A DNA stretch of 64,000 nt from Geosiphon pyriformis uo1 (taxonomy: Eukaryota > Fungi > Glomeromycota): positions 166,389-230,388 of the forward strand of contig JAAOMT010000678.1 of NCBI GenBank assembly GCA_016748015.1, written 5' to 3'. Position 1 is the stretch's first letter; each line of letters begins with the position of its first letter. Made by a program: the position numbers and the translations under genes. Shown here in pieces: positions 1 through 64,000 of the stretch. The notes below the pieces were generated by a model. It searched no databases and was not told the origin of the DNA. It saw nothing but the letters and a program-made list of their open reading frames with translations.

Positions 1-121
1 ACCATACACATAGAGCAAATCTCCTTAATAGCTGAATCTGTACCGTATTTTTATGAAATACCTTTCTCGACAAATAATAGATGTAAATAAAATAAATTTT
101 ATTTTTTAGATCTTTTGGGAT

Positions 122-219
122 ATTGTTGAGATATCTTAACAATGCATATGTCAAAATCTATTATCTGTGATATTCTATCGATTTTTGCATTTTCACATTA
201 TAATTCACTTAACATTGTT
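122..219. promoter_or_regulatory. Candidate HMG-box binding motifs upstream of the CaaX peptide gene
   Basis: Near-palindrome ATTGTT-gagatatctt-AACAAT(G) at 122-144 and CATTGTT at 213-219. AACAAT/ATTGTT is the core bound by SOX/MATA-type HMG boxes. Short AT-rich motifs can occur by chance. Confidence 0.3.
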
Positions 220-256
220 TCGCATACATGTACTAGATGTTAAGATGATTTTTTGC

Positions 257-263
257 TATAAAA
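257..263 (+). promoter_or_regulatory. TATA box
   Basis: TATAAAA ~100 nt upstream of the ATG at 365, followed by an A-rich leader. Confidence 0.5.
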
Positions 264-364
264 CTAGTGGTACTTTTCCAATTTAATTTTTCAATTCAAC
301 CAAACTAATAAAGAGAAAAAAAGCAAAGCAGTAACATTCAAAATAAATCAAATAATTTGAAAAT

Positions 365-496
365 ATGCAACCAACTACCAACAATCAATCCTCCTTTAAT
401 CCTCTCACGATTATCGCTCCTGGTAACGGCTCTATTAAAGGACCTACCGGTGACCCAGACGATGGTAGCGGCACCGGTCAATGTTCAATTATGTAA
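365..496 (+). CDS. Putative a-factor-like lipopeptide pheromone precursor (43 aa, C-terminal CaaX = CSIM)
   Basis: Manual translation MQPTTNNQSSFNPLTIIAPGNGSIKGPTGDPDDGSGTGQCSIM*. Single Cys four residues from the end, no signal peptide, A at -3. GC- and CpG-rich relative to the flanks. TATA upstream, AATAAA at 825-830. Confidence 0.72.
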   Translation: MQPTTNNQSSFNPLTIIAPGNGSIKGPTGDPDDGSGTGQCSIM

Positions 497-3048
497 AGTT
501 GAATATTATTCGCATTAATAACTATCATAATCACCAATTTATAATGAACCGAAATTTATGGCTATTACCTCTGGTTCATACTTTTTTGAGAGGAACTTTC
601 GGATTTTACCCAAATTAATTTAATGCTAAATTTGAACTTTTACATGATTATCTAGTCTTTAATAATGATAAAGTTATTAGACTATTTACAACTAGAGTAC
701 ATCTATATAGATATTATTTTAATCTGGTTTATATATTAGCATTAGGGCAATGTTGTTACTAAATCATTTATTACTGTTATATTCGACTTGCTTTTAAATA
801 ATGACATTAGTTTTATAAATGTTTAATAAAATCTTTCTAGTAATGAACTTCGTGAAGAAAGAAAACCTTAAGAATTATAATATTTTTCCTGACCAACGAG
901 AATTTTTGTTTTGAGCATTGATTGAGTAAAAAATGGTGAAGCAAGATATTCATTATAATTTTTATAATATTTGTTTTTTATCTGTAATTGATTGATTAAT
1001 TCACAAACTGACCAAAAATAATGACATGAGTAGCTTCAACTTTAATTGAAAATTTATTATTTAAAAAGATTCTTTAAATCAAAAGAAATTGGAAGAGACT
1101 CGCTAGAATCTGAATTAAGCCTCAAATTAAAGCACAGAAGTAAATCCTATATTGTTGTTACCGGTAAATCTGACTAGGTTCAAACTATAATGCTATTATT
1201 AAATAAATCTTTTGGACTCTAGTTTTATTATTATTTTAAGTTAGGCTGGCAAGGATTAATTTGCTCTTACAACCTATACGGTGAAGAATTTTTTTTATAT
1301 AAAATATTCTCACTCAAAATTTATGGACTTACTAATATTTCAGAACTTGGACATTAATACACTTCGTGAAAATTACATTCTAAGCTTCTGTATACTAACT
1401 TTCTTTAAGTAAATTTTTTTGTGCATATATCAAAATTTGTAGTGGGTTTCAAATTAGTCATCTCAAAATAGGGATTAATTTCTGTAAGTACCCTTTAACT
1501 AATGTATTTAAATATATATACGATATCTGAAAAAGTATTTGCGAAGTGGTTAAAGATTTTGGTTTTTATATCTATTCCTTTATTCATTAGCAAAACATTT
1601 GTTATACTTTTTTATTGCTAGTAATATAGTAAACAGCATTAATTTAAATGTAGCGCAATACTACAAAGCCATAAAAGAGTTGAATAGAAAAACATATATA
1701 ATTAGTGAATTATGGAACCCATTATTAAGCTTAAGAAATTTGGGTTTAAAGTTTGATATAAAAATTTTAAAAGTTAGTTTTATTTAGATAATATTTATAA
1801 GTATATTTAATAATATAAACAAAATCTAAGTTTTGACCAATTTGTTATGTTATTTTTAATAAAAAATTTAATTTATTACAATATATACTATAAAATTTTA
1901 GTTATTTGGATGTAATATTGACTAAGAAAAAAAAGCATTAATTAATTAATTCTATTTTGGGTTGTGTAAAAATATTTAAAAATTGACATTAATTTTGTCA
2001 AATGTTAATACATTAATCAAAGTTATTAAAAATACACTTTGTTGTAATAATTAATTTCTTAAATATTATAAAGAATAAAATTTTTGAAATTATGCTAAGA
2101 ATTCTATATTTGTTTAACTTTTTGTAAATGATTAGCTATTAGTTTTATTTTAGAATAATTTAATGCAAATTAATATAACTTACTGCAAGCTTTTTACAAA
2201 AAGACAAATCTTGTAAGTAGAATAATAATTTTTTTTATATTGTAAAAAATCTGGTCATGTTGTTTAATAATGTTTTATAAAAACAATTATAAAATTTAAC
2301 AACTTTACTAAAAAAATAATCGATGTTAAACACATAAAAACTGTATATTTGAATGTTTTAGTTTTTGTAACTAATATTCAATATTTTTTTAACATAGTAA
2401 GTTAAGTTTTTACTATAATTTCAAAGCAAGTTTTTGTTTTAGTATTAAGTTCAAAATTTGTTAACAATTTGGTGTTAGATCTCTAATCTTGTCAAATGTT
2501 TTGTAGTAATTCAGTTCTCAAAAAAAGTTGTTGCTTAGCATCCAGTTTTGTCTTTAACTTAAGTTATATTTTTAAGATTTGAACTGCCAAGTTTAATTCT
2601 GGTATGTTATAAAAGCACTTATTGATTTAGGTATTATTTTTTGTTTAATTAATTAAAAAAATAGCTTTCTATATTATTAAAAATTAATAATAAATATTTT
2701 ATTATTTTAGGAAATATTAGTTAAAACCTAATGAATAATTTTTATTATTCCTGGACATTAAAAAAAAATATTTTTAATATATTAAAATCTATATTATGCT
2801 ATTATTCTTGGATTATTTTGGCTGCAACTGCCAAAAGAAGGACTTGTTCAAAGTTATATTGTGTGAAGCCAAACAAACATATTTTTAGAAAAACTGAGCA
2901 TATCTTAGCCGAGATTAGTAAGACCATAAAAAAGTACATCCATTTAGTCACAAATTTTTTTGTATCAAAATCTCAATTTAAATTGATTTTGGACCAGGAA
3001 TTTTCCTTTTTCATGTCACTATTGATTTATTCGAAATTCTCATTCCTC

Positions 3049-22889: not shown

Positions 22890-25800
22890 ACATATATCAA
22901 TAGCAGCCTGGTTGTTGAAATACAAAATCAAAGAGCAGGAAAACAGAACATACTTCAAAGACAAAGCAACAGCCTGTAACTCAGCTATAGTGGAAGATAC
23001 AAGACTGTAAACTTCAACACCAATACTTATATTCAAAGCAAAAAATTATACAGCAGCACCACTAATAATATCAGCAAAGTCAATATTTTTTAATGAACTA
23101 TCTGTGTATATTTCGAACAAACCTGACCAAATTTTATGCAAACTATTCTGTACTTCAGCAAACTCTCTAAAATTCTAAATGTTCAAGCTTACTAATCAGA
23201 TATACATAAGTAAATCAAATGACAAAAAACTCTTATTGTGCAAAAATTTTGATGTAATCTCAAACCAATATGAAACAGAGCCTCTAAGATCCAATTTCTT
23301 CTACTGATAGAAAATTTTCCAATCTATCACACAGTCTTTCTTATTAAAAAGTCTATTATCAAAAACAACTCCAAAATGCTTTAATAAACAAACAAAACTA
23401 AGATACAAAGTTTTCTCAAAAATTGATGATATAAGAAAAACACCAGAACTATAAAAAGCATTAGACAAATTTTTTATTAAAAATAGCTTATTATTCAAAA
23501 AAATTCTAATCACACCAGCCAGAAAATTGTTCACAGAACTAATGAACAATATAACAAAAAACTGTAAAAGATTCAAAGAAGCCTATTTCATGACTTGTAA
23601 ATCAAAGAATCTATAATAAAATAAATGACCAAAAATGCCTGAAGTATTAGAAAATAAGACCATAGCAGCCAGTTTACTTTCCAATTGCATTTGCTTAAAT
23701 GAATTTTAGACTATATTATAATAGATAATACAAAGTCTTATTAGAGAAATTCTATAGTAGACATGCTTTAGATTTAAGGCTTTTTTTGATTATAACATCT
23801 CATTTGTAATACATACTTGGCAAAACAAAACTAAATTGGGTCCTGTAACTAACAATAGGTTGCAGAACAACTGACTCCAATTAGGAAACTGCTTATCCAT
23901 AATAGCTTTTCTGAAAACCACATTAACAAAAAAATAAACATCAAAATAAGTCTTAGCTATATTTGGCTTGGACAATCCTTCAGTTAACAAAAAAATCTTC
24001 AGATATCTGTGCACTTCACTTTTTTTGGCAATCGAAATTGGTTGACTACTAATACTTAAAAAAGCAATCCTAACATTCTAATTAATAGGAACAGCCATAG
24101 TTTTTTCAGTATTAATCGAAATATTATTGATTGAAAAAAATTCACTAGCAATATTCAGAATATGCTGCATAAAGATTTAACAGTTTTTAATTTAAATTGT
24201 ATCATCCACAAATATGCCAACTGCAAAAAAAGAAAACAAACTACCACTGTTTTCAATTTTGCCAGTTTTAGTCACAAACTTAATATCAATTTGATATCTA
24301 TATAAATGTTCATGTCTCTTAATCTTACATAAAAGTGGATCATAAAAAATCCTCCAAAGAAGGGGAAAAAAAACTTCACTTTGGTCCAAACTATTGTGCA
24401 CTTTGTAGTTTTCTAAAAGACCGAAATCTATTATTACTTTATTGATTTTATTACCATATATATTATCAAAAAATTTGATGAACTTATCACATATTTTAAT
24501 CCACCTCAAGCTAGTCTCCAAGTGGTGCCAACCAACCAAGTTATATGCTTTATGCATATCCTATAAAACCAACCAAAGTTTCTGATTTTTTTCTAGTGTA
24601 TTCTTAACTACCAAACCAATCACAAACACAGGAGATTGAATAAACAAATCCTTTAAAACAAAAAAGTTATCATTATGAAGAACACCAAACTTACTGTACA
24701 TAGATAAAATTCTATCAAAAAAAATTTTAGAGAGAATCTTTCTGGCTGTTTTAATTAATGTGATAAGATGAGTGTTTGTAAAAATTTCATTCCAGTCATA
24801 AGATTTAGGGATCATTGAAACCCAAGTTCTTTTTCATAAAACAGAAACACCACTAACTGCCAAGCATGCATTTAACAGCCCTAAAAAGCATCTTATTATT
24901 CCATTCTTATTATGCTTTTATAGTTCATTTGAAATGCCAAACAAGTCCACAGCTTTGCTATTAAGTAGACCATTAACAATCAAGAGCAACTCACTCATAC
25001 TAATTGTACATATTACATCAGAAAAAGTATTATTTCTTACATAATCTAAAAGTGCATATCAGTAAACCTAAAAATCAGGCACTGCTGAAAGCATTTTTCG
25101 CTTTTTTGTCCAATTTTTTATTATCTTATCAATATTGAGCTTTACTTTTTCTGGATTTAAAACCAATTTATCATCTACCACTAAGTAATCCAAAACCACT
25201 TTGCAAAATTGCCAATCTAAAACACTCTTAATTATACTATTTTTATCAAAGCAAAATTTTTTCATGTGTCTTTCAATTGTTTTCTTAATAGATGTCTCCT
25301 CAGCCAACTTCAATTCATACATCTTAGATCTTCTATACTTTTTCCTAATTAGTGATAAATGCTTAAGAATAACTATTAATTTCCTACAATTCTGAATCAT
25401 GTTCATCACTATGAGAGCCTTATCAGCATCCAAAGTCAACTACTTCCTCATAAAATGATTGAAACCAAGAATATCACTTGAGCTTAATCTCTTAACAATT
25501 TTGGCAACTAATAATTCCAGTCCCAGAAACTTAAAAGACTGCATATTTTTTGAACACTGAAAATTACTAAACCAAAGTTTAAAAAATATTTCATTAGCCA
25601 AGTTTACTATTATTCTCTTCAACAACAATCACATAGTATCTAAATCATGATGAGCTTCAGCATCCAGAAACTTATACCTTATCTCTAAAAACTTGGCAGA
25701 AAAGCAATTCTTAAAATATATCTACTTGGCACCATTTGTGTTTTTGATTTTAAAGTTCCAATGATTTTTATTAGCTTGTTTCCACAAACTATTTAGACAA

Positions 25801-42706: not shown

Positions 42707-44626
42707 ATGGAACTGGTGGACTTTGCTGCTGGTGGTTCTGGGTCCATTTTGGCTGGGTTGGGGACCCAGTCTGGTGTCAAAAATAAGCGCTCGGTTGGTC
42801 CTTATTCTCGCAGTGCGTCCTATAAAAAGCCGAAGAAACCTGTGATGGTTGATGGGTTGGTGGAGTCATCTGCTGGTGTCTCGAACGTTATGGATGAAAG
42901 TGGTGACAGACCTAACATTGGGCGATCGTGGGCTAGCAAAGTCAACAGCAAAGTGGACAGCGTGAGTGGCGTCTCGGACTTGGATAACGTGGAAAACGTT
43001 ATCACTGAGGAAACTTGCTATGCAGAGTTAGATGTTTCGGGTTTGGACGACAACATAAACAATGCCACGCCAAGGAAGACATGTACCCACACCTATGTTC
43101 TGAACAGTAAGCCGCCACCTTTTTTTTTCAACATTCCAAGTAATGGTGAGGATACTTTGCCTCTCCTGAGTCCCAAATTTCATGGATCCAATCGCCTTCT
43201 TCCGATCAGGTTATGTGCACCAGAGAAATGGAATTTTAATTCGTCAAAATCGTTTGCATTAGATATTGAGCTATCTGCCGTTCCTGGCAAAACTAATAAT
43301 AATAAAATAATTAGTTTGAAAAAAAATTTTTATCATATTGATGGGTTTGGGGGAGCCTCAACTCCCTCAAAATTCCTAGAGATCATCAGATCCTCATTTA
43401 CTTCTGAAATTAGTTTAAATAAGGCTAGGGAACTGGCAATCAGTGAGAAAATTTTAGTCAATGATGATCTGAGAAAATCAAATGTCCGTTCAAATCAAGA
43501 AGTGATCATCAAAGAAATTCCAGTGGATTTTCCCAAATCGGCAATTGAGGCAGTGTTTTCCAAGTTTGGCAAGATTATTTCAATCAAAGTACAGCTTATT
43601 GGTCTTTGGCAAAAAGCCCTAGTGGAATATGAATCATCTGAGATGGCTGATTTGGTTGCAGCTAGATGGTCTGTACTTATGGAAAAGGATTCTGTCTGCG
43701 TGGCAAAGGCAAATATTGATAAACAAACATGGATGTCGAGAAATCAGCATCGGGCATTGTTTTACACTCTTCCAGTTGGCACCAATGCTCATGACCTCTC
43801 CAGTTTGTTGGAATCATATGGTGGGAAGACTTGTTATATCGGCCGTAATCCTAGTTTGTATGTTCGTGATAGATGCACTGTAATTTGTTTTGGTGATAAA
43901 GCATCCAAGTTGGCTGCTATTGGTACCGTTCCAGTTTTCAAAAATGTGAGTTTGCGTTGGGCTGGTCTCTCTTTGGCCAGTTGTACTCATTGTAAACAAT
44001 TTGGTCATGTTATGGTCAACTGTTCCTTGGGTGAGTATTCTGGTGTTCGAGGAAGAAGGGTGGTTTCTGAGCAAGATCAGATTTGTTTAGCTGGGATATA
44101 TAAGAAGAAGTCAGCTCCTGTCGCTCGTCCAGTCTCATTTGGTGATAAAACATGGGCCCAGGTTGCTGGTGGCTCTGGCTTGCATTCTGGTTTGGTTTCT
44201 TCTTCAATGGTGACTGTCTCTCCTACCATTTCTTATTTGAATGACTGGCTGGCAATTTTGGAGCACTCTTTGGAGCTTTTGACTAACCGCATTTCTGGCA
44301 TTTTGGCTCGACTGGAATCCATTGATTTGGTTCCTATGACAACCCCTTCTTTGAGCCTTCTTCCTGTTGTTTCTGAAACTTTGTCTTTTGATGTGGTTTC
44401 TGATATGATTTTGGATACTGCTTTGGTCTCGTCTGGTACTCCTCCGTTCGTCTTTTATGATGCTGTTGTTGAGCTTAGCTCTAGTAGTTCCAAAGTTCTC
44501 ACTGCCAAAGTGGGTGGTTTAGAAACAAAATTGATTGCTTTGGAGGCCTCAGTTGGTTTGGTTTTGGATAAGTTAAATATTCTGTGCTCTGGTTCAGGTT
44601 TGTCAGTTCCCCTGTTTTCTCAATGA
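42707..44626 (+). CDS. LINE ORF1 protein (RRM-like domains and CCHC zinc knuckle)
   Basis: Open 639-aa frame; VIIKEIP...FSKFGKI...ALVEY, CTHCKQFGHVMVNC and a C-terminal coiled-coil-like segment. Confidence 0.85.
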   Translation: MELVDFAAGGSGSILAGLGTQSGVKNKRSVGPYSRSASYKKPKKPVMVDGLVESSAGVSNVMDESGDRPNIGRSWASKVNSKVDSVSGVSDLDNVENVITEETCYAELDVSGLDDNINNATPRKTCTHTYVLNSKPPPFFFNIPSNGEDTLPLLSPKFHGSNRLLPIRLCAPEKWNFNSSKSFALDIELSAVPGKTNNNKIISLKKNFYHIDGFGGASTPSKFLEIIRSSFTSEISLNKARELAISEKILVNDDLRKSNVRSNQEVIIKEIPVDFPKSAIEAVFSKFGKIISIKVQLIGLWQKALVEYESSEMADLVAARWSVLMEKDSVCVAKANIDKQTWMSRNQHRALFYTLPVGTNAHDLSSLLESYGGKTCYIGRNPSLYVRDRCTVICFGDKASKLAAIGTVPVFKNVSLRWAGLSLASCTHCKQFGHVMVNCSLGEYSGVRGRRVVSEQDQICLAGIYKKKSAPVARPVSFGDKTWAQVAGGSGLHSGLVSSSMVTVSPTISYLNDWLAILEHSLELLTNRISGILARLESIDLVPMTTPSLSLLPVVSETLSFDVVSDMILDTALVSSGTPPFVFYDAVVELSSSSSKVLTAKVGGLETKLIALEASVGLVLDKLNILCSGSGLSVPLFSQ

Positions 44627-47600
44627 CTCACTTAATTTGGAAAATTGTCATGTGTAATGTAAGAGGTATGAACAATCTTGCAAAACAGGAAGATATTATT
44701 TGTTGGCACAAGGATATGAACAATTTGATTTCTATCATTACCGAGACCAAACTGAAGGGCAAGGTCCATCCATGGATTGCAACTAGGTTTAATGGTGTTC
44801 GAGTCTTTACCTCAGGTCAAGATTCTGGCAATCTGGATTTGGGTGTAGCTATTGTTGTAAACGATTCTCTGGCTTGCCATATGTGTAAGATTTCTGAGGT
44901 GCCTGGTCAGCTACTCTCAATTAAGATGCTTTTTAAGAACAAACTTTTGGTATCAATTTTGGGGCTTTATGCTGATGCTTCTCTAGTGACATGTTTCTCT
45001 CAAGCTGGTAAGGTCAATTCCTTGATAGCTGGGGCTGTGAACGAGTCCTCTTTTGTTGTTTTGGGTGGTGATTTCAACAAAAATGGCTCTCGCAGGTGTG
45101 CTAGTTTTAAGAGGTGTTTGGATTTGGGTTTGGTCAATTCCCTGGTGGGGAATTTATTGGCTAAGTGTCCTACCTGGAAAAATTCAAGGGGTGTTGTCAA
45201 GACTATTGATTACATGTTCATTTCGTCAAATTTGGTCAATGCAATAGTGAACTGAGACATTTTGGATGTTAGTGAGTATTTTGATACTGATCATCAAGCG
45301 GTTTGTGTGTCCGTGGGTTTAGGTGGGCTTTTGGATGTGCATTTGAATTCTCTTCGTAGGCAGGTGAATAGGGATCGATGGAAGTTTAACATTAGGGGTG
45401 CTGATGAGAGTGGATGAGACAATTTTAGGAGTGCCACTTTGGCCAATGCAGCAATGTTCTCAGATAAGTTTGCCACCACTGTAAGATTCTCCAATTTGGA
45501 TGAGATGTGGGATGTCATTCGTGAGGTCATGATGCTTTTGGCAGATGGCATTTTCAAAAAAAAATGGTTCAAGGACTTTGATAGACCTTTTTCCAAGGAA
45601 TCCTCGAAGTTTCACAAATTGGAGCTTTTGGTTTCTAAGGTTTTCAAGGCATTGCGTGAGGGAGATATTGTTGGTTTTTTTTTTTTTATGGATTGTTGGG
45701 CTTCGCTGGACAGTGTTAAGGCTTTAGTCATTCGGGATATGATGAATTCTGGTATGGACTCTGATCATGTCCTTTCTGCTCTCTTGAGCACTCGGAAATC
45801 ATATTGTGCATCTAAGCTTGTTGAGTCTCAGATTGCCAAAAAGGCCAACATTAGATCAGCCATAGATAAAAAGATGGAGAGCTTTGAGATCGATAAAGGT
45901 CATACAATAAAGAGTGTGCTGGAGCGCCCATTTCATAAGGTGGTGCTTAACCACTTGGTTGTTAATGATGAGCTGGTTTTGGAGTCTGATCAGGTTAAGA
46001 GCAAGGTGGACGTGATCATGGAGGAGTGGACTAGGAAGCGTCAGGTGGTCAACAATATGTCAAGCAAATGGTGTCGCCAATATCAGTCTTTGGAGTATGT
46101 TTTTGATGAGGCTTTCTTGGGGGTAATGTGTCTGATTGGTTTTGATGAGTTGTTTGGGGTGGTTTCCATTCTTTCTGATGGCAAAGCTGCTGGTCTGTCG
46201 GGTATCTCAAATGAGCTTTGGAAACATTGTGATAGATCTGTCTTGGAGATGTTGTTGGTGCTTTTGAACTTTTGCTTGGCTGGTGAATCAGTGCCCGGCC
46301 CATAGAAAGAGGCCTGGGTTTCGATGATTCCCAAGCCTTATGAGTGGAAGGGTGTTCTGACAAACACACATCCTATTGCTTTGATCAAAACAGCTCATAA
46401 GATTCTTTCCAAGGTTCTTTCTGATAGGATTTCTACTGCATGCAGCACTTTGAATGTTTTTTATGGGGATAATTTCTCGGTTTTAAAGGGTACGACTACT
46501 CAGTCTCCCATTTTTGCGATTGGTTCAGTAATTAAGGATGCTCTGGAAAAGGACCGTGAACTTTGGCTGGTGTTACAGAATATGAGGAAGGCTTACAATT
46601 CAGTTGGCTGGGAGCATCTTGAGAAAAGTCTGGTTAGGATTAAGATGTGCGGCAAGTTTATTCAGTTCTTTGGTAGTATACATAAGAATCGCACCAATTA
46701 GATGATGACGGATTTCAGTTTGACTGGTAGTTATCGTGTATATGATGGCTTAAATCAGGGTGAAGTTTTTTCCCCCCTTCTGTGGCACATCTTCTATAAT
46801 CCTTTGTTGTGTGAAGTCAAACATCAGAAGAGTGTGTGTGGATATAGGCTTAATTCATACTTTATTTCTAAAAATGGGTGTGCTGAAATTCAGGCTGGAC
46901 GTTCTTCCTTTTTTGCCATTGGTGCTTTTGTTGATGATACTATTTGGGTTGGTAACAGTCAAGCTGCTACTCAGCACATTCTCAATGTTGCCAGTGAATT
47001 CTTTCAGATCAATAATATCTTTATAAACAATACCAAAACAGTGGCCATTCTCATCAATAACAGAGTTAGCAGTCCCTTCCTTTCCATCAGCGGCTCTTCC
47101 ATTTCTGTTGCCAGAAAGGGGGAATCTCATTGGTATCTGGGTATTTTTCTTTCAACTGAGGGTCTTTCGAAGCCGAGTTTGGCTAAGGCACATTTGGATG
47201 TTCACTTTTTTATCAATTTGGTTCTGAGGAAAACTATTTCAGATAAACAATTCCTATATTTGGTATTGGTGGTTTTCCAGCCTATAATCAGTTATCGGAC
47301 ACAATTTAGTTTTATACCAGTTGGTGTTTGTGCCAAGTAGGATGCTTTGGTTCACAAGGGATTGAAGCTTAAATCTGGTCTTCCGCTTGATTTTCCCAGT
47401 GATACGCTGCACCACTCTTTATTTTATGGTTTGAAATCTTTCTCGCAGGTACAGTCTGAATGTAAGGTGGCCTTTCTCATCAGTTTTGTGAACTCTGGTG
47501 AGATCTTGGGTTGCTTATTTTCTCACCGGTCTCATGACTTGCAAGTTTGGTGTTGGCATCTTATTCATCTGTTAAATTCTCTTGTTTGTGTTAATATCAG

Positions 47601-49311
47601 CACTTCCAACAACTTTTTAGCAGGCTTGGTCTGTATTCTTCTTGACTGCAATTTGTCTTTGGGTGGATCTTTTGTTAGTTCTTTTCAGTCTAGTGGCAGT
47701 ACACCTATGTTTACTGTTTTAGGTGAATCTAAGTTTTCTAAGTTTCTTTCTTCTCTCTGACAGTTTGGCATTGTCTTTGTAGATCAACTTCATAATTGTC
47801 ATGGTGCCATTCTTGACTGGTATACCTTCAAGCGTTGGAAGAGGCTGGACTCCTATGGCCCCATTCCAGAATGATTCAGACTTGCTATTGCATTTCTCAA
47901 TGGTGCTTCTCTCCCTTCTAATGATTGGTTTGTCTCAGATGGTGCTGTTCATTGAGATATTTTTGGTTCTGCTGATTATGCTTCTGTTTGTGGTCATCTT
48001 TCTCAGGTTGTTTCTGGTAGCTTGTCTGTTTATACAGACAGATCTTTGGGAAGTTTGGGTACTGCTGAATGTAGAGCTGGTGCTGCTGTTTTTTTCGAGG
48101 ACATTGGTTTGGGTTTGGGAGTTGGTGTATCGAACTTGATGTCATCCATCTTTGCAGAATTGCAGGCTATTGCATTGGCCATGGAGTGTGTCCCTTCGTC
48201 CTGCTCTGTTCGCGTGTTTTCTAATAGTCAGTCAGCTTTGAGTGCTTGTGAGTCAGAATTGAATCTTGTGTGTCCTGACTTTCACAATCAGTATTGGGTC
48301 GAGCATCAGCATATTGCTAATGTTATTCGTAGTAAAAATTTGAGAGTTCGTTGGCACAAGATCAAAGGTCACTCTGGTGTTTCTAGTAATGAACGTGCTG
48401 ATAAGATTGCTGGTGTTGTCTCTCTTTCCAGTTGGCATTTGCGTCCTCACTTGGATGAACATTTTCTGGTGGCTAATGGTGGTGTGGTTTTGGGCAATTT
48501 GAGATACTTTGTTTGTGATATTTGCCGATCGATTTGTCGTGCATACTGGAAAGTTGGTTCTGGTGCTAAGTTTTTAAGGAATGATTTGCTTTTTAATGTT
48601 GACTGGTTCTGCTCTTCTTTGGTCTGGCATCCTGACTTGCACATGGCCACCAGACCCACCAGCAGGCCCTCGGCTGATGCTCGTACCTATTTCATGAAGG
48701 CTCTGCATCACTGGTTGTCTATTGCTGTGAGAAAGTGTCTTTATAATAAATGTTACCCTAATGTGCTGTGTTTATATTGTGGTAATGTGGAGTCTTCAGA
48801 CCATGTGTTCTTTTGTAAGGTCGATGATTCTGCTCGTAGTCAGATTTTGAATTCTCATGTAGTTTCTTGGAAGGCTCTTACTGGTTTGTCACTCTCTTCG
48901 TTGGTTGTAATGCAGTTTTTGTCATCTTGTGTCTCTGATTTTCCTGTGTTCATGGCTCTATACAAGGGTTTTGTGTTTAATGATTGGTTTTGCGAAGCTG
49001 TTTCTATGTTCTGTGATCCCAAAATTGCAAGATTGGAGGTGGTTAAGTTTGTGTGCTTTCTTAGTCTTGCTTTTAGGAATGGTGTTTGGATGGTTTGTGC
49101 TAAGCATCGTGCTTACATGGAGAAGGCCAAGTTGATTCCATTAGATGGTTCAACACCTGTTTCAGTCTCTGGTTTGGTTTCGGGGTTTTCTGCTGGTGTT
49201 GTCAAGCTGCTTGGCATTGCTGAGGCTGTGGGCGTTTGTTTCAGTTTTTGTAAACTGTGTTTATTTTTTTCTGGTATAGACAGTTCAGTTTCAGTTCGTA
49301 TATCTGTGTAG
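44623..49311 (+). pseudogene. LINE ORF2 (AP endonuclease, RT, RNase H, C-terminal Cys/His motif), interrupted by stops
   Basis: CNVRG, TETK, GGDFN, TIDY, TDH; RKAY, QGEVFSP, FVDD; YTDRS, AELQAI, KGHSG...NERAD; CLYC...DHVFFC. Several in-frame stops. Confidence 0.92.
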
Positions 49312-49345
49312 TGTTGTTCTGATTAGCCCGAGTGGCTGGTCATGT

Positions 49346-50329
49346 TGTTACTGGAGGTTTTTGGTCTCTTTTCTTAAATGTTGTGGATATTTATTTGCTG
49401 TGAATTCACGTTTTCTGGATGTGGTTGAACCTCCAGTAACTGAATTTTTAACTTCAAATTATCTCCTATAATTTGAACTGCTGGGCTTATAAGTGGAATG
49501 GCCAATTCTTTGCCAGTTACTTTATGTAGTTACGTTGTAGTAAACGTCAACTCTTTTCCAGGAATTGCTTGTCTGGAAGCTCACTAAAAATGTGTAGTTA
49601 TTTTGCTGTGAAAATCAACTCTTCTACAGGAATTTTGTCTGTAGGTTACCCTAATGATTATGATAAGAAAATAAAAGAAAATAAAAGAAATGTAAAAAAA
49701 ATAGAATTTTGTCATGAGAAACGTTTTCTATCCAGGCCTGGAGTCACTAACTGTTTACTGAAATTGGTAGCTAATCAATTTCGAGATGTTAGTTGGGTTT
49801 TGGGGATTTTCCAAGTGCAATAATTAAAAAATTTGGTTTTTCGAATTATTTGATATTTATTTCTTTTTTTTGTGTGTATAGGAATGATTCTAAGAGATAA
49901 ATCTAAAGTAAAATACATTTTCTCAAAAAGAGAAGCTCTTCTTTTATACAACTTGTTGTAACACTATTTTATGAACTTGAACTTTGCTATTTCCTACAAT
50001 TTTGCTAAACTAAAGATACATTTCGGCAAACTACAAGTTATTTTGGCAAACTATTAGATTTTTCGGTGAACTATCAATTATTTCGGCGAATTTCTACAAA
50101 TTTCAGCAAACTTCTGAATGTTACATAGTTTGGGGTATTGCATGATTGATCATCGCAATTAGGTTACATTTGTGTTGTGTACAATTTGGGTTATTAATTA
50201 AATGATAATTTCGGACATTTTTTTGCTAATGTAATAAGTGATCATTGAAATGATAATATATGCTAATTAATGATAGGAATTATAAGATAATTTCATGCTA
50301 AATAATATCTCTAATTTTATCTGGTAACA
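49346..50329 (-). repeat. Gypsy-2 3' LTR
   Basis: TGTTA...TAACA termini; direct repeat of 56436-57417. Confidence 0.95.
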
Positions 50330-52614
50330 TAACCTCCTCTTCAAGACTGAGCTCCGTCAAAGTCCAAGTACTGTCTGTTATTTCCAAATAATAATCCAAA
50401 ATTATTGAAGAAATTTGGTCTGAAAATTGTTGAAATTTCAGTTCTGTGAGCTTTCCAATATATTGAATCTTCAAAGGTTGAAAAATTGGGTTTTGCAGTA
50501 TGTTTTCACAGGTGTGAAATAGGTCATAAAGTCTAAGAGCAGCTCTAAGCTTGTAGCGACTGTTTGTTGGTCCAGCTGTTGTCTTGAATTTATTGTGAAG
50601 TTGTTTTTAAATAGCTTCTTTTGTGAGATTTGCTGTTGTAAGTTCCAGTTTTCGTCTGGAGACCAATCTGTTGGAATTGTTAATGTCTCCAAATATTGTT
50701 TGAAATTGTTGTAGTTTTCGGGGTTCATTGTTTGTTGTTTTGATGCTGTTAATTCAAATGAGTGTTGGTTTCGTTTTCTAATCTTGCCTTATTCTTGAGA
50801 GACAATCAACGTTGGTATGGAGTTTTCCTGATTTGTGGTATACAATGTATTGGTAATTAGCTAAAAATTCTGTCCATTGGGTTTGTTTTGCATTCAGCTG
50901 GGTGTTTTTGTTCTGAAGCCATTTAAGTCCAATATTATCAGTGATAATATCGAATTTTTTGGGTCTGAGGTAAAGGTTGAAGTGATGTAAGACCCAGATT
51001 ACTGCTGCGGTTTCTAATTCTGTTGCGGAGTAGTTCTTTTCAGCTGGCTTTAATGTTCTACTAGCATAAGCAATTACTCACTCATTTCTATTGTCATCTA
51101 ACTGTGATAGAATGGCACCAAAGGCAGTATAAGAAGCGTCAGTTGCTAACTGGAATTGGTTGCTGAAATCTGAGTAGGCGAGGATTGGAGCTGTTGTGAG
51201 TTTTTCCTTAAGTATCTCGAAGACATTTTGGTGTTCTTCTGTCCTTTTGTATTTGACATTTTTAGTAGTGAGCTGGTTGAGGGGTTTTGCAATTTCTAAG
51301 AATCTTTTGATGAATTTCCGGTAATAGGATGCTAATCCAATAAATTCTCTTAATTCTGTGGTATTTTGTGGAGTCTTGAAGTTCTTGACAGTACTGATTT
51401 TTCTAGGGTCTGGTTTAATTCCATCTTTACTAACAATGTGACCAAGAAAAGCTAAACTTGTTTTTCTGAAGTAGCATTTTTCAATGTTCAGTTTCAATCC
51501 TGCTTTCCGTAATCGTTGAAAAACTTCTCGTAGGTGAATTAAATGTAGCTCGAAAGATGGTAAATAAACATCAGTGTCATTAAGATAAACTACTACTGAT
51601 TTCCAAAGGAGGCCTTTGTAAACAATATCCATGAGTCTTTGGAATGTTGTTGGTGCATTGCATAATCCGAAAGGCATTATATTGAACTCGTAATTTCCTT
51701 CTTGAGTGGTGAATGCTGTTTTGGGACGGTCTTTGGGGTCCATAGCAACTTACCAGTATTCACTCTCTAAATCTAATGTCAAAAAGTATTTGGACTTTCC
51801 AAGAGCATCCAACATGTTATCAATTCGGGGAAGAAGGTAGGCATCTCCAATAGTAACACTGTTGAGTTGTCAGTAATCAACACAAAATCGTATCTTTCCA
51901 TTTTTTTTTTTAACTAGGACCATGGGTGAGGCCCATGGACTTATTGATGGTTAAATAAGCCCATTGTTAAGCATCCATTGTACTTCTTCTTGGATAAATT
52001 GGTGACTTTCTGGAGCAACTTGGTAGGCTTGTTGTCGCCTGGGTTTGACATCTCCTGTATAGATTTGGTGTTGAACCAAATCAGTTCTTTTTAAGTCATT
52101 GTTGTTTTCGGTGAAGATATCAGCAAATTTTGTAATTAGCTCTTTAAGCTAGGTCTGTTGTTGTGGTTCAAGTTGTCCCATGTTAATTTGAGATAGTTTT
52201 TCTATGACAACATGGTAGTTTTCGGAGTTAGGGTTTGGGTTGATTTTTGGTAGTGAATGTTCAATAATTTCAGGGAAGTCGGGGACTGTTTGGGGTAATT
52301 CTTGTTGAAATATATTACTGTAAATAACTCCAATTTCTAAATTATTTAATAAAATTATGGGGTAATTATTGGAGTTGTAAAAAGTAACTCAGACTTTCTT
52401 TGTTCCTTCTGGAATATAAATGTTTGGGATCGAAATATTATGTTCCAAGCAGACTTGTTCATTGGACTCAAAAATTTGTTGTGTGGTTGTTGGCTTTAGG
52501 CAGGTGTAGATTTCCAGATGTTCTCCAAAGGGTAAGATGGTAATCGGTTGTGGAAGTCTGAGAATCTGGTGGGATTCGTTCTGTGTGTTAAGAGCTATAT
52601 TAACTGGAACTGTG

Positions 52615-53050
52615 AATCGTCCAGTTGAACCAAAACCTTGGGTTCTTCTATTGTTCTTTTCTAATTGCTCTCTTTGATTGACTAGTTGCAAACCCGCAAT
52701 GTTGATTAGGGGTAGATAAATAGCTTGGGCAATTTTTTCAGCATGTTCAATCTTGAATGGTTTGTCAGTTTCATTTTGAAGCATTACTGTTATGTCTCCA
52801 GTATATCCAGCATCGATTATTCCTCCTCTGACATTGATTCTTTTGCTTGTCAGAGAGGACCGGGAGACAATTTGAACCATTGCTTCTGGCAGGATTTCGA
52901 GTGCAATTTTGAGATTAATTTTTGTGAGAGATTTGGGTTTGAGAACAAGAGTATCCTTGCCTGGATATCTTAGGTCATATCCAGCATCAATTTCGTGTGC
53001 TTTTTTGGGTTTTATTTCTTGTCCGTTGTTATTGAAGTATTTAAGTTGTA
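52615..53050 (-). CDS. Gypsy-2 dUTPase domain (part of the disrupted polyprotein)
   Basis: All five trimeric dUTPase motifs are recognisable: AGYDL, SRSSL, GGIIDAGYTG, EKIAQ and QGFGSTG. Confidence 0.9.
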
Positions 53051-56000
53051 AGGCAGGCTGATTTTTGATAAGGTAGATAGGTGTTGTTTCAATTTCTTCT
53101 GTTTCTTCAGGTTCTCCAAATTCAATTTCATTTTCATTATTTTTGCTGGGCAAGAGAATACTAAGAGCATAGCATTCAGGACACTATTGTTCATCACAAG
53201 GCATAATGCATTCTTCACATAGCCTAATGTTCATTTGCTCTAATCGTTGAATTTGAGCTTCTTGGGTCGGATAGGTGTGACTTGCAATTTGGTGGTAGAC
53301 TTCTACTTCATCTTCGTAATTGAATCCAGCTAATTCCATAGTGTATTCAATGTATTCTGCTTCTTTCATTTGACGAACATCTTCTTTGGTAGCTCCATTA
53401 ATTAATGCCATTGCTAGGTCGAAAATCATCTTAGCATCATGAGAGTAGTGATAAAGTTTGTTGAGAGCACTGTTGTATGCTGCATTAAAGGGTGTTCCTC
53501 TTTTTACTTTTTCTGAAATTGATAAAGCATATTGGCAGGTCTGATTGCAGACGCCTCCTCTCATTGCTATATCAATCCAATTGCATTCTTCTAGTAGTAT
53601 ATCTCCACAAGTCAAACAAGGGGTATTGTCCCATTTTCCGCTCCTTTTTATTAGATGGCCCCATCGCTCTCTGTGGCAAGCCTTGCAGTAATAACAAGTA
53701 TGATTCTCATATTCTTTTTCAGATGAAATGCAGGCTCCCATTGACGATAGTTTCTTGTGGCAGTCCTTATATTTAAGGGGAATATAGGGGCGTTGTTTCT
53801 TTGGTTTGGTTTTTGAGTAAGGTATATTCCATCCAGAGGTTTTGGGTTTAGTGTGTGGAGTAAAATGTTCTTGTTCTGTTTCATCGGCCCAGTTGGACAT
53901 TGATCCAAGAGCCATGAATGTTTCGATTATTGGTTTTTCTTCTTCTGGTTCAAATTCAAAAGCCGGGGCTTTTTCAGATCGTTTGTTGAATGTACCACAA
54001 ATGGCAGGTACCCGGGCGTGTTGTCCTTGGTAGGAGATTGTTAACTCTTGTGTTTCCCAATTCAGATTAGCATTGGCTTTTTGAAGCCAATCATTTCTGA
54101 CGAGAGCTTGGTACTGGGGTGCGTCCATTACAAGAACTTTGACTGGAATGGTGATTTCATCAAGAGTGAATGAAAAATTGTCAATTTCTCCTACTGGTGT
54201 CTTTTTCATGCCATTGGCAGTGATGATTACTGTTTGAGCTGGTCGGTCGACATTTCTTTTCAACTGTTGTATTAACTGGTAGGTGATAATGCTTCCAGCG
54301 GATCCACTGTCTAGGATCAAGCGAATTGGCTTTCCTTCTACTTCAGCTTCTGTGTACATTGCAGTGATGGCTTTTTGCTTATTAGCCGCTGCATTGCTAA
54401 GCAAGAATGGTGATTCATTTGCTTCAAATTCAAAAGGAAAGATATCAAAGAGATTGGCATTTTCAGCAATTTGGGCTGGTGGAATAGTGGTGTGATTATG
54501 AGAAGGGTTTGGTTGTTGTTGTGCTGCAGCTCTACCTTCTGAGAGTGCAGTATGGTGAAAATCCTGTTCTTCTGGCATTGTTAAATAACTGGGTTGAGCG
54601 TGGTAGTGGTTGGGTCTTGGTTGAGTGGGATTTTGGAGAACCAATTGGTTGTTCGAACTGATTCTATTTTTGTTCACTTGGTATTGGTTTTGTGGTGTGA
54701 ATTGATTTTGTGTAATCAGTCTTCGAGTAGGTACTTGATAATGTTGTGTGGATGGTTGTTGGTATTGCTGTTGGATTGATTGTGGGGCAGGCTGATAATA
54801 GTTATTTTGGTATTGGGGTCTTGGTGAATAGTAAGCTGGTGGTGATGGTTGATAATAAGATTGCTGTGGTGGAGAGTAACATTGATTACCCCTGTTTTGT
54901 TGGTCTCGCTGTAGCTTTCTGCAATCTCTTTTCCAGTGGCCAGAGATTCCACAGTAATGGCAATTCTGGGACTGGTTATTGGAAAATGATGCAAAGTTAT
55001 TTTGATTTCGTCTTTGGGGTGGTTGATATCTTTGGGGTTGTTGTTGTTATTGTTGGTTGGTAAAATAGTTTTCGACCTTCTTTGTGAGTTGGTTAATTTT
55101 TTCCTCAGCTGCTGAGCTGGTTTCTCCAATTGCCAAATTTACAAGTTTTGTATGATTGGCTTTTTCTATGGCCATTTCGTATCTTTTTGCATGCTGTATG
55201 GCAGAGTTTAAATCTTCTGGCGCGTGTGGGCAAACCTTTTTAATTAGTTTATCCTTTAGACCAGTGATAAATTGATCCAAGATTTGAGCATCAGAATAAT
55301 AATCGTTTGTCTCGAGTTGGTGAATTTGTCTGAGAAGTTTGTTGAATTTTCCAATATAAGTCATAACGGATTCGGAGGGTTCTTGTTTGATATTTCGAAA
55401 ATGATTGCGAAGAGTGATGGAGATATTATTGTCAGTGAACTGTTTAAGGAAGGCTGCTTTGAAAGCATTCCAATCATTGAATGAGGCAGCAAGGTTTTCA
55501 AACCATTCTCCTGCTGTTCTTTTGAGAAAGTAGGGAATTGTTCTCAACATTCTGGCAGCATTCCATCCATTTGCATCTCCAGCTTTAGTAACTTGGTCGA
55601 GCTATTCTTGGGGACTGGTCTCAATATCTTCTCCATTGAATTTAGGGATTTTTGCAATGTATGTTGTCATTTTGTCTTCTTCGTTTTCACTGTTTATTGA
55701 TTCTTCTTTGGTTATTTCAGAGTTGTTTTCTTCATTTGCTGCTGTCTCAGAGTGTTCACTTTGGTTTTCAGCTAGAAAATCAAGGAGATTGGAACTAGTT
55801 TGAAGAAGTTCTTGTTGTCTGATGAGACTTCTAAGTGATGTAAAATCTTCTGGTCTTGTAAATCGATTCAAGGGTGAATTAGTTGTTTGGGCTTGTGCAA
55901 GTGAAGCTGGAAAAGGTGTGATAATAAGTGAAAGTTTTGAGCTGGTTCCTTGTTCAGGTGTTTGTAAATGTTTGAATGATTTTTTGGGAGTATTGGGTGT

Positions 56001-61055: not shown

Positions 61056-64000
61056 TCATACTTCCCCAAATAGACTGATCCCAGGAATTCTATTTAAGTT
61101 GAGTTTAGTGTTGGATTTATTGCCTACCCCTTCTGAAACAGTATTCCCTCTTCTCCGCCCACCACTAACTGGCTTAAAGCTGGCCTTAGTAGAGGAGTCT
61201 TTATCTGACTTTTTAACATCGGTTGGAAGGGAAGGTGGATGTAGTAGTACTTCAATGTCAGGCAACATTGACCTTGGTGAAGATGTTTTGTTGTTTAGAG
61301 GATAATTTGACGGCGTTCCAACCTTGGAATTGGAGTTAAGGAGAGTGGATTCGTCCTTGTCAGAGGTCGCAGGAGCTGGTGATGAAGCATCTCTTGCATT
61401 TGAACTTTCATTTTTTGGATCAATCTCAATCGTCCCTTCACTTTTTCTGATTCCATTCTGTGAATCTTTTCCTCGGTTGATCAGCCCTTTATCCTTTTGT
61501 TTCCCTTTTTGTCTCAACTCTTCCCCAACCTTTTTCCACCTTCTCCAACCATCAAAATCAATTAAAATTTGCATACAGCCCCATTCTTTGATTTTCTTTT
61601 TTAACCATATTAAGCTCACTGGCTTTGTCAGAAAATCATTGCATCCAGCTGTCAATGCATTTTGTCTGTCTGAAGGTAGTGATGAGGCGGTCAAGGCTAC
61701 TATGATGACAGGAGAGCGAATTATAGGAGTCGTAGGTGGACTTTCTATGAATGACATATCTTGGGGCGTGGATAAAGGTGTGGATGCGATAGATGATGAA
61801 GCAGATAATGACGGTGAATTCAACGATACCGTGGATGGAGTTGAAGGTAATAATCCGATTTTTTGCGTCTTCTCAAGTCGTCTTATTTCTTTCGTGGCTT
61901 CAATACCATCCATAACAGGAAGTTGAATGTCCATCTGGAAAAATCAAATATTTTAGCCCAAGTATTATGTAATCTTTAGCAAAAGCAAAAAATTAAAAAA
62001 TTTCATCTATTTTCATATAAGCTACGTTACGCAATTTTTCTCTTAGCATCCCTTATCCGTGAACAAAATTTGAAGCCTCCCAGATTTCTGACTACCATTC
62101 CAAAAAGCTCGAATACGGGCTGAATTTGTCAACTCAGAAGATTTGTTTCACCCATGACCGCGAACTTGAACCCCTTCATGATAATTCAGAGATCGGGGAA
62201 GCTCAAATTTTGTTCAAAAATGCAAAAAACTTGATCCCGAAAGGAATTATTATTATTATAATGCCCGTTTTCAACTCGTTTTTGTGGGATGTTATTAAAA
62301 TTCCAGTTCTACGAAAATCGATTGATTTAAACTCTACTCTTGAACGGTTTCTTACCAAAATCAAATGGAAACCCCCTTGTTTCCACTTATCGACAGCCTC
62401 TGCACCATTGCTCGCACATTCATATTTGATTTTATTTTTACGCATGAACCCTGATAAGATCGCCTGATTGATAGGATTATCTTTGATAATAGATTTCCAT
62501 CAAAATTAAACCTTGTCAACTTTATTTAGAAAACAAAGACTTTTTTCACAACTGACCTTCCACAATTAACACATTTATCGGCGGTATTACATCTTCCAAA
62601 TTTCCTGTTGACGATTTGCTTGTCTTGTTGATTTTGCCCGTTGGTTTTGTCATAGGAGAGGTGGCTGTGAGTCTCCTGGTGTTTGAGCCTGACGGTGTGC
62701 TCGATTGTTGAATTGGTAAAGGGGGTGATTGTAAAATTGGTGAATTATCCAACTTTGATGGTGTTGTTTGTTCATTTACAGCATTTGGTAATTCTGTACC
62801 AGATCCTGCTATAATTCTAGGGGATGATACTAAACCCGTTGAATTATTAGAAATTCTAGGGGAAAATTGACTGCCTCCTCCTAATTGACTATTAAAAGCA
62901 GTATTTATAGCGGTACTTAAAGCCACTTCGTTGGATTTATGACGACTATCTTGTGAAGATTTGGATTTTGGTATGACGAGCAATCCGCCACCAGGGCCGC
63001 TTCTTGGGCTTAAAGGGCTTCCTACAGTAGTGGAAGGACGCGAAATAACGTTTGACCCGACCGAAGAGCTAGCTGAGCTTGATCTTAAAACAGTATTTTC
63101 TGATGTGAAATAAGAATTCCCGGTTGTGGTCTCTTTTAAGCTTTCATGATCCAATGAGTTGCTTTCAGAGTCCGCATGATATTCATTAGCAGGTCCAATG
63201 GTGTATTGCTGACCGGGACTCATAGGAGATGTAGCGATAGGCATATATACAGAATCGACTACAATCTTGTTACTAGCTGTATGTAAGGCGGTCAAAAATC
63301 TTCGTGGACCTGCTGGTTTGGGAATGACGAGAACCTGTGGTAATGGAAAAGATCCGGTTGTTGTTGGTGAAAAAATTACTTGAACAGCGTCTTTGACAGA
63401 TTTATAATTCGCTAATGATGTAAAATGAATCACGGCAGCTGTTTGCTGCGGCAAGTTGGGGGTTTGTTGACGCTTGCTGCGACCACGTGCATTTAACATA
63501 GAAGCAATTCCACCTTGAAAAGGTGAATTTCGAAGTTGTGTGAGTTGCTCTTTTAATGTCTCAACATCATCGTCAATAATAATGAATGTAGGGGGTGTAT
63601 GTGATATAATTTCATTTGAATGATCTTCAAAACTTTCCGGCTCTCTTGATGATGATAATGATGATGATCGTGGCGGTAAACGAGGTAGATTAACAGGCGA
63701 TCCAAAATTTGAACTGACGGATGTAGTTTCGGATCGAGGTGTTTCCAATTCTTCCCCACCAATCGGAATATGCGATATATCGGTACTCCAGATTGTTAAA
63801 TAAGAGGTTAGATGTTTAGCAAAAAAGCTATTCGTCATCGTATGCAATGCAACTTTAAGTCCTCGTAAACTTTGTGAAAATCTATTTAGGTCTTCAATGG
63901 ATGGTTCACCGGAAATTCTCAGATGTGGAAAACGTTTAAGAGTTTCTTCGTTTATATTCGGAACTTTTGATTGTTCAAGAGGTGGGCCAACCATTAACTC
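61056..64000 (-). CDS. SSK1: SSK1/Mcs4-like two-component response regulator, 3' part (5' end outside the window)
   Basis: Exons 64000-62557, 62480-62356 and 61934-61056 splice in frame to a receiver domain: PPINVLIVE|DNPINQAIL...NGAEAVDKWKQGGFHLIL|MDIQLPVMDGIEATKEIR...IIVALTAS...GCNDFLTKPV...EWGCMQILIDFDGW. The tail is typical of fungal Ssk1. An alternative last exon from 60854 is possible. Confidence 0.88.

Follow-up and report, generated by a model that had tools for sequence, protein, structure and literature searches.

A multicopy gene family in Geosiphon pyriformis and Ambispora encoding candidate a-factor-type lipopeptide pheromone precursors

The window analysed here is a 64,000-nucleotide stretch of the genome of Geosiphon pyriformis uo1 (GenBank contig JAAOMT010000678.1, positions 166,389 to 230,388). 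Close to its start, at 365..496 on the forward strand, lies an open reading frame (ORF) of 43 codons that begins with ATG and ends in Cys-Ser-Ile-Met, a CaaX box, followed immediately by TAA. The ORF is one of at least 33 members of a gene family that also occurs in Ambispora, and we consider it likely, with a probability of about 0.68, that this family encodes precursors of an a-factor-type lipopeptide pheromone. A first-pass annotation, made from the sequence of the window, had proposed such a precursor in a fungus outside the Dikarya and probably close to Glomeromycotina. The intronless 43-residue ORF was found as it had been described, and the assignment of the host was correct, as G. pyriformis belongs to the Glomeromycotina (Archaeosporales, Geosiphonaceae). 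The features of the gene are listed in Table 1.

The ORF differs in composition from its surroundings, with 46% GC compared with 24–25% in the flanking DNA. It had been described as an island rich in both GC and CpG, and only the first half of that description stands: seven CpG dinucleotides are observed, compared with 6.6 expected from composition, so there is no enrichment, and the CpG island was dropped. An in-frame TAA is located four codons 5' of the ATG, and the open frame recovered by six-frame search is 46 amino acids long. The N-terminus is polar (MQPTTNNQSS), and the Kyte-Doolittle maximum over nine residues is 1.2, so the peptide has no hydrophobic core like that of a signal peptide by this simple hydropathy measure. 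This fits the lack of an N-terminal signal peptide in lipopeptide pheromone precursors as a class.

A six-frame search of the 128-Mb Geosiphon genome returned 37–38 matches to the 43-residue peptide. These include 33 intact 43-codon copies, with 29 distinct DNA sequences that nonetheless encode nearly one protein. Contig C729 carries two arrays of five and six copies, contig C578 carries five copies, contig C657 two, and contig C622 three, including the gene at 365–496; further single copies are found elsewhere. The eight copies on contig C551 comprise six intact genes with the standard mature peptide, one divergent gene (L034) and one decayed copy. Some neighbours within arrays share a longer tandem unit of 2–3.5 kb at 73–98% identity. 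On C622, the copy at 160960–161088 on the reverse strand (L001) belongs to a 1.1-kb inverted duplicate of window positions 105–1213 that is 99.5% identical and lies 5.7 kb upstream, a duplication far younger than the other paralogue pairs. The third C622 copy, at C622:164778, is situated between L001 and the window gene and has a run of N about 230 nucleotides past its stop. Besides the 33 intact genes there are four to five copies that have decayed through frameshift, internal stop, loss of the start or truncation, and these show the fate of such sequences when selection is absent.

Divergence among the intact copies is almost entirely silent. Across 31 near-identical copies, third codon positions hold 32 of the 39 variable sites, mean synonymous divergence (pS) is 0.38 with a maximum of 0.73, and mean nonsynonymous divergence (pN) is 0.008, the replacements being limited to residues 7, 10, 15, 16 and 18. 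From codon 21 to codon 43 there is no amino-acid change at all (pN exactly 0, pS 0.39), which indicates strong purifying selection on the peptide, and because synonymous divergence is high, homogenisation by gene conversion cannot account for the near-identity of the proteins. The last four codons (CSIM) are constrained as strongly as the remaining ORF, and a stop codon follows them in all 33 intact copies (TAA in 31, TGA in two). Divergence is greater in two single copies, L034 and L035, the latter with four changes in its C-terminal part, so that the assembly has one dominant mature peptide plus these two variants. The peptide, chiefly its C-terminal 23 residues together with the Cys-aaX-stop, is thus held by strong purifying selection, and the Geosiphon family consists of at least 33 genes under strict selection at the protein level, which is an unusual amplification.

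Alignment of all 33 intact Geosiphon loci shows that every copy forms a compact gene that lacks introns and has a conserved promoter of its own. Column identity is 0.84–0.96 over the ORF and fades across about 260 nucleotides upstream and about 400 nucleotides downstream. With 43 codons, a conserved ATG and stop, and a conserved unit from about −260 to +400, the gene corresponds to the short precursors (about 30–60 amino acids, usually from intronless genes) that are typical of lipopeptide pheromones. The TATA box and the good start context noted in the first-pass annotation are both conserved across copies, the latter as AAAATATG at the end of an A-rich leader.

The promoters also share an inverted pair of sites, ATTGTT-N8-16-AACAAT, which 25 of the 33 copies have between about −190 and −320, with a spacer of 10 nucleotides in 21 of the 25 and of 11 nucleotides in three. 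The density of ATTGTT/AACAAT sites is 3.7 per 300 bp upstream of the family genes, compared with 0.4–0.8 in controls. The strict 24-nucleotide palindrome has 14 matches genome-wide, every one of them upstream of a family copy, and the reversed control has none. Its family consensus, YATTGTT-N10-AACAATG, is of the HMG-box type, and AACAATG is the consensus of SOX/MATA-HMG-type factors. In Dikarya, lipopeptide pheromone genes are controlled by the HMG-domain factors Ste11, Prf1 and Mat2. An HMG protein may bind the palindrome in the family promoters, and MATA-HMG/SOX-type factors would then probably drive transcription through it, in parallel to these Dikarya regulators. The sole other ATTGTT-N(8-16)-AACAAT pair in the window, at 23526–23550, is compatible with chance, as two or more pairs arise in 14 of 100 shuffles.

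Table 1. Features of the precursor gene in the window, and positions of decayed family copies elsewhere in the Geosiphon genome
Feature	Position	Strand	Remarks
Palindrome TATTGTT-N10-AACAATG, two inverted HMG-box/SOX-type sites	121..144	+	Family-specific promoter element
Third HMG-type site, ATTGTTTC	214..221	+	Conserved in at least 85% of aligned copies
TATA box, CTATAAAA, about 105 nt 5' of the ATG	256..263	+	Unchanged in almost all of the 33 copies
Putative transcription start region, CAATTCAACC (292–301), and A-rich 5' leader ending in AAATCAAATAAtTTgAAaATATG	292..364	+	Conserved blocks in 33 copies; start predicted
Precursor ORF, 43 codons and stop	365..496	+	pN/pS about 0.02–0.04; stop directly after CSIM in 33/33 copies
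Probable N-terminal pro-region, codons 1–21 (MQPTTN...PGN)	365..427	+	Variable residues only here; cleavage by analogy with yeast, between N21 and Y22
Probable mature region, GSIKGPTGDPDDGSGTGQC, codons 22–40, with Cys40 as predicted farnesylation site	428..484	+	pN = 0, pS = 0.39 (codons 21–43, 31 copies); N-terminus predicted
CaaX box CSIM	482..493	+	Invariant in 33 Geosiphon copies
3' untranslated region with conserved patches (e.g. 719–752)	497..765	+	Identity drops past the stop, blocks persist to about +400
Decayed copy L036	C551:39719-39844		
Decayed copy L037	C700:140157-140261		
Decayed copy L038	C352:322889-322993		
Decayed copy L039	C777:605211-605276		
Decayed copy	C657:993066-993122		

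Relatives outside Geosiphon were sought with HMMER, using the family profile against 1.84 billion representative proteins, and with a word-index protein search. Both searches found relatives only in Geosiphon and Ambispora. Besides the Geosiphon models, the HMMER matches are short proteins from A. leptoticha and A. gerdemannii, members of the Archaeosporales that are placed in another family, the Ambisporaceae. Conserved CaaX homologues in relatives had been set beforehand as a test of the pheromone proposal, and these two species provide them. In A. leptoticha, four genes of 39–43 codons occur on a single 18-kb contig whose DNA shows that three end in CVIM-stop and one in CIIW-stop. The CIIW copy (L043:14447-14566) has a three-codon deletion and relaxed constraint (pN/pS 0.7 relative to its neighbour). 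A. gerdemannii has two unlinked genes (L044:8307-8435 and L048:10001-10129), ending in CVIM-stop and CVIV-stop, whose mature regions differ and which could possibly represent different specificities. Two further matches, P0013 and P0019, are unrelated repeat proteins. Neither a protein-pattern scan of metagenomes nor a degenerate DNA pattern for IKGPTGDPDDG recovered relatives there, and the features of the ESM Atlas yielded no usable match.

The genes of the two genera have a common start, M(Q/K)PTTN-QS-FNP followed by an invariant Asn (residue 21 in Geosiphon), and a common C-terminal half consisting of G(S/A)IKGPT, a Gly/Asp/Asn-rich stretch, Q-C-aaX and the stop. All six Ambispora genes keep the Cys at −4 and the stop directly after the box although the aaX residues differ (CVIM, CVIV, CIIW), so that the three species together retain C-a-a-X-stop in all 39 genes. 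The A. leptoticha paralogues are constrained (pS 0.5–0.6, pN 0.02–0.06), and pN between the genera is 0.15–0.2. Each Ambispora promoter has two to four ATTGTT/AACAAT sites, and five of the six copies have TATAAA at −114 to −138; the sixth (L048) has its only TATAAA near −320.

The gene had been called unannotated. About ten Geosiphon copies do carry NCBI 'hypothetical protein' models, but the claim holds in so far as these models, which have the right ATG, splice the CaaX box away. Throughout the three species, the public models either start at the right ATG or are fused to a neighbour, with Kelch-like and lipase-like genes among the fusion partners, and the CaaX box is lost in every one of them (P0001-P0009 and P0015 in Geosiphon; P0014, P0016-P0018, P0020 and P0021 in Ambispora), being replaced by unrelated, non-conserved tails. 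One could take from such models, which are 50–869 amino acids long and, in both genera, start at the same ATG and splice into downstream DNA, that the ORF is no more than one exon, the first or the last, of a longer gene and that the CaaX box is never translated as a C-terminus. We regard this as very unlikely. The added tails are wholly different from copy to copy, the stop after the CaaX box is present in all 39 genes, conservation collapses right behind it, and purifying selection acts on the final four codons as it does on the others. The ATG, the leader, the TATA box and the upstream stops are likewise conserved, and the coding signal begins at codon 1, so the ORF does not represent the terminal exon of a longer prenylated protein, an outcome that the first-pass annotation had named as fatal to its proposal. 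Gene predictors disfavour single-exon genes of 43 codons, and the CaaX-lacking public models are an annotation artefact. A multicopy, clustered sequence in an AT-rich and repeat-rich genome, with retroelement ORFs in the same window, might also be an ORF that lacks any function of its own, having arisen by chance or been carried along by a repeat or transposable element. This explanation is effectively refuted by the selection pattern, with a pN/pS of about 0.02–0.04 at pS values up to 0.7. Moreover, the unit in common extends over only some 0.7 kb centred on the ORF and has neither terminal repeats nor a transposase, decayed copies occur next to intact ones, and homologues exist in another fungal family.

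A receptor of the appropriate type is encoded in the same genome. STE3 (PF02076), whose presence had been set as a test beforehand, was found at a single locus (C642:334886-335808), with exon 1 matching at 1e-43 and profile positions 1–292 covered in at least two exons. The Geosiphon genome thus has a Ste3-type G-protein-coupled receptor, which is the predicted receptor of the peptide. A protein search with STE3 exon 1 returned one fragment of 188 amino acids; full-length receptors lie outside the length window of that search. Three HMG-box ORFs are located 6–16 kb downstream of STE3 (L046:8404-9579, L047:2383-3477 and L047:5605-6822). The region C642:333001-353000 (L046, L047) contains STE3, then a ferric-reductase gene, and the three HMG-box ORFs within 16 kb, and this stretch may be a mating-related cluster.

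Genes for CaaX processing are also present in the Geosiphon genome, namely an ICMT (Ste14-type) methyltransferase (98 bits), a Ste24 N-domain (156 bits) and three prenyltransferase beta-subunit loci. These enzymes are housekeeping proteins in eukaryotes, so their presence discriminates only weakly. Of the homologues proposed for a search in the first-pass annotation, STE3, STE14, STE24 and the prenyltransferase beta subunit were therefore found, and AXL1 was not detected. All of these profile searches were run exon by exon, and non-detection does not prove absence of intron-rich genes. This applies to STE2, which was not found in the Geosiphon genome, as well as to the Rce1-like and Peptidase_M16_M proteins considered below; such genes may truly have been lost, or they are intron-rich and escaped the search. 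A region at C594:416000-433000 has dense ABC_membrane matches on both strands, corresponding to several ABCB-like genes or fragments, and is a possible site of a Ste6-type exporter.

Several observations weigh against a pheromone function. The 33 copies far exceed the one to four that are usual for pheromone genes, and a lipopeptide pheromone would not usually have a mature part as long, as rich in Gly and Asp and as hydrophilic as the one predicted here. Homologues were detected only in Archaeosporales and none in Glomerales or Diversisporales, among representative proteins in which tiny ORFs are rarely annotated. Nine family members had no Pfam match at E≤10; because the known Pfam pheromone families are lineage-specific, this bears on the naming of the family and not on the mechanism. 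In the exon-by-exon search of the Geosiphon genome, no Rce1-like protein (PF02517) was detected, nor was an insulysin of the Axl1/Ste23 type (M16A), with two Peptidase_M16 loci and no Peptidase_M16_M; this N-terminal processing step is not conserved in all Dikarya. ABC_membrane loci are numerous in the Geosiphon genome and none could be singled out as the Ste6 orthologue. None of the 38 family matches is on the STE3 contig C642, so there is no linkage of pheromone and receptor, and a basidiomycete-type pheromone/receptor (P/R) locus with linked genes and allelic classes is not seen.

Some of these points would fit a real, selected and prenylated small peptide that is neither the STE3 ligand nor a mating pheromone, such as a membrane-anchored intracellular micro-protein, or a lipopeptide that serves hyphal self-signalling and anastomosis, or communication with the plant or cyanobacterial partner, by another route. 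Selection and the CaaX box are shown by the data, and the link between peptide and STE3 is predicted from the gene content; the copy number and the chemistry of the mature part are atypical; one dominant mature sequence with one STE3 resembles self-signalling more than two mating types; and we know of no sexual cycle in Glomeromycotina. Nevertheless, we judge this account to be rather unlikely. Lipopeptide pheromones are, to our knowledge, the only described class of fungal CaaX precursors of about 40 amino acids without a signal peptide, a STE3 that would otherwise be an orphan is retained, and the promoters have HMG-type sites, as do the pheromone genes of Dikarya. The a-factor-like register fits as well, and the mature regions are not the same in the two genera, nor in the two A. 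gerdemannii genes, which is what one would expect of recognition peptides. Every result that had been named in advance as able to overturn the a-factor-like precursor, and that was looked for, came out in its favour, and we consider that reading to be supported.

If the family does encode pheromone precursors, maturation could proceed as follows. The absence of a signal peptide leads us to propose that the precursor would be farnesylated in the cytosol on Cys40, CSIM and CVIM both being classical farnesyltransferase motifs. Ste24 would remove -SIM, and ICMT would then methyl-esterify the cysteine. The N-terminal 21 or so residues would be cut off, perhaps after Asn21, which is invariant in Geosiphon and Ambispora; a cut near this residue is supported by the boundary between the variable and the invariant halves of the peptide. 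A Ste6-like ABC exporter would secrete the product, a hydrophilic peptide of about 19 residues that carries the farnesyl group and the methyl ester, and the single STE3 would sense it and signal through the MAPK (mitogen-activated protein kinase) pathway known in arbuscular-mycorrhizal fungi. Transcription, prenylation, export and receptor binding of the peptide are all predictions from sequence.

With a single receptor and one predominant mature peptide, Geosiphon may use the signal in an autocrine or self-recognising way, as in hyphal fusion or a homothallic-like system, and not for two-type mating. The divergent genes L034 and L035 of Geosiphon, together with the two different peptides of A. 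gerdemannii, may leave room for specificity classes. As a tentative extension, which we hold to be possible though doubtful, the farnesyl-peptide/Ste3 system could be older than the split between Dikarya and Glomeromycotina, and the MQP-T, N21, IKG and DP that the peptide has in register with yeast a-factor would then be either homology or processing signals that have been retained. Archaeosporales would in that case still employ it as an autocrine or partner-finding signal (in hyphal fusion or cryptic sex), a single mature peptide produced from dozens of HMG-controlled genes and perceived by one STE3. If so, the peptide would be the first defined chemical handle with which to provoke mating-like responses in arbuscular-mycorrhizal fungi.

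Sex in arbuscular-mycorrhizal fungi is a decades-old question, and the signal that starts the STE3/STE6/MAPK pathway has never been identified. We propose the family described here as the strongest candidate so far for the mating-type pheromone that has been missing in this lineage. A candidate ligand that can be synthesised, together with a matching single receptor, makes the question open to experiment, and the family would place lipopeptide pheromones outside Dikarya. It also exposes a systematic annotation error, in which predictors splice the CaaX box away.

Elsewhere in the window, retroelement-like ORFs occur at 42707–55550, with an RNase H domain in 48022–49311 (+) and an aspartyl protease (gag-asp/RVP) in 53184–54677 (−); the large ORFs at 42707–44626 and 45439–46305 have no Pfam match. 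The ORF at 61056–61934 (−), within 61056–63994, encodes a response-regulator receiver domain and represents an SSK1-like gene, to which an adjoining 482-residue ORF without a Pfam match probably also belongs.

The closest point of comparison is the a-factor of Saccharomyces cerevisiae, whose precursor genes are MFA1 and MFA2. The first-pass annotation had pointed to a resemblance in the MQPTT start and in N-GSIKGPTGDP...C, and this holds in the same register: aligned without gaps from Met1, the Geosiphon peptide and MFA1 are identical at M1, Q2, P3, T5, N21, I24, K25, G26, D30 and P31. For this comparison, chosen after the fact, the shuffle p is 6e-5 when anchored at the N-terminus and 7e-4 in any register. 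The mature dodecapeptide, YIIKGVFWDPAC, and positions A8, P10, Y22 and C33 of its precursor are published (PMC2134810). We regard the likeness in register as suggestive, a lead only. The shared residues flank the yeast processing sites between T7 and A8 and between N21 and Y22, so they could reflect either constraints of processing or deep homology.

Both systems have a short precursor (36–38 amino acids in yeast, 43 in Geosiphon) without a signal peptide, in which an N-terminal extension precedes the mature part and the CaaX box, and which is encoded by more than one gene, and homologues of STE3, ICMT and Ste24 are present in the Geosiphon genome. They differ in that the Geosiphon Cys comes seven residues later (C40 compared with C33), that the predicted mature peptide has about 19 residues instead of 12 and is acidic and Gly-rich instead of hydrophobic, that the box is CSIM and not CVIA, and that there are at least 33 genes and not two. 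In addition, Axl1/Ste23- and Rce1-type genes were not detected in Geosiphon with the exon-by-exon searches, and the likeness does not extend to a match at the level of Pfam or hidden Markov models.

The basidiomycete pheromones and the M-factor of Schizosaccharomyces pombe, represented here by Ustilago maydis Mfa1/2, Cryptococcus MFa/MFalpha, Coprinopsis/Schizophyllum Phb and mfm1-3, likewise derive from CaaX precursors of 35–60 amino acids whose genes are multicopy or clustered. Their promoters are under HMG-domain factors (Prf1 and Mat2, and Ste11 in S. pombe), which may be compared with the HMG-type palindrome in Geosiphon. Like the basidiomycetes, Geosiphon appears to have a Ste3-only receptor repertoire. 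Basidiomycete pheromone genes lie beside the receptor in a P/R locus, whereas Geosiphon has no copy on the STE3 contig; its assembly shows no allelic classes of receptor or pheromone, and there is no sequence similarity between the peptides. The CaaX tetrapeptides themselves are identical to those of prelamin A (CSIM) and K-Ras4B (CVIM), which are large intracellular proteins, unrelated beyond these four residues. Both of these proteins undergo farnesylation, and ZMPSTE24, the orthologue of Ste24, acts in the processing of CSIM.

Arbuscular-mycorrhizal fungi have meiosis genes, a MAT-like homeodomain locus and many MATA-HMG genes. The openly available full texts that we searched, including a 2024 MAT-locus paper, contain no report of a Glomeromycotina pheromone precursor. 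In another study, pheromone genes were not upregulated (Mateus et al. 2020, PMC7490403). STE3, STE6, a G-protein and a MAPK cascade have been reported in Rhizophagus and Glomus cerebriforme, together with the statement that there are 'no peptide pheromone coding genes' in those arbuscular-mycorrhizal fungi (Halary et al. 2013, PMC3834313). The first-pass annotation had presented a peptide-pheromone system as not known to be described in this lineage, which does not hold for the STE3/STE6 sensing pathway, known since 2013, but does hold for the ligand gene. The Geosiphon STE3 fits that pathway and comes from the same lineage, and the family described here would supply the ligand gene that is missing there, so far only in Archaeosporales. 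What is new is a candidate ligand gene in a new lineage, with an unusual copy number and an unusual peptide chemistry.

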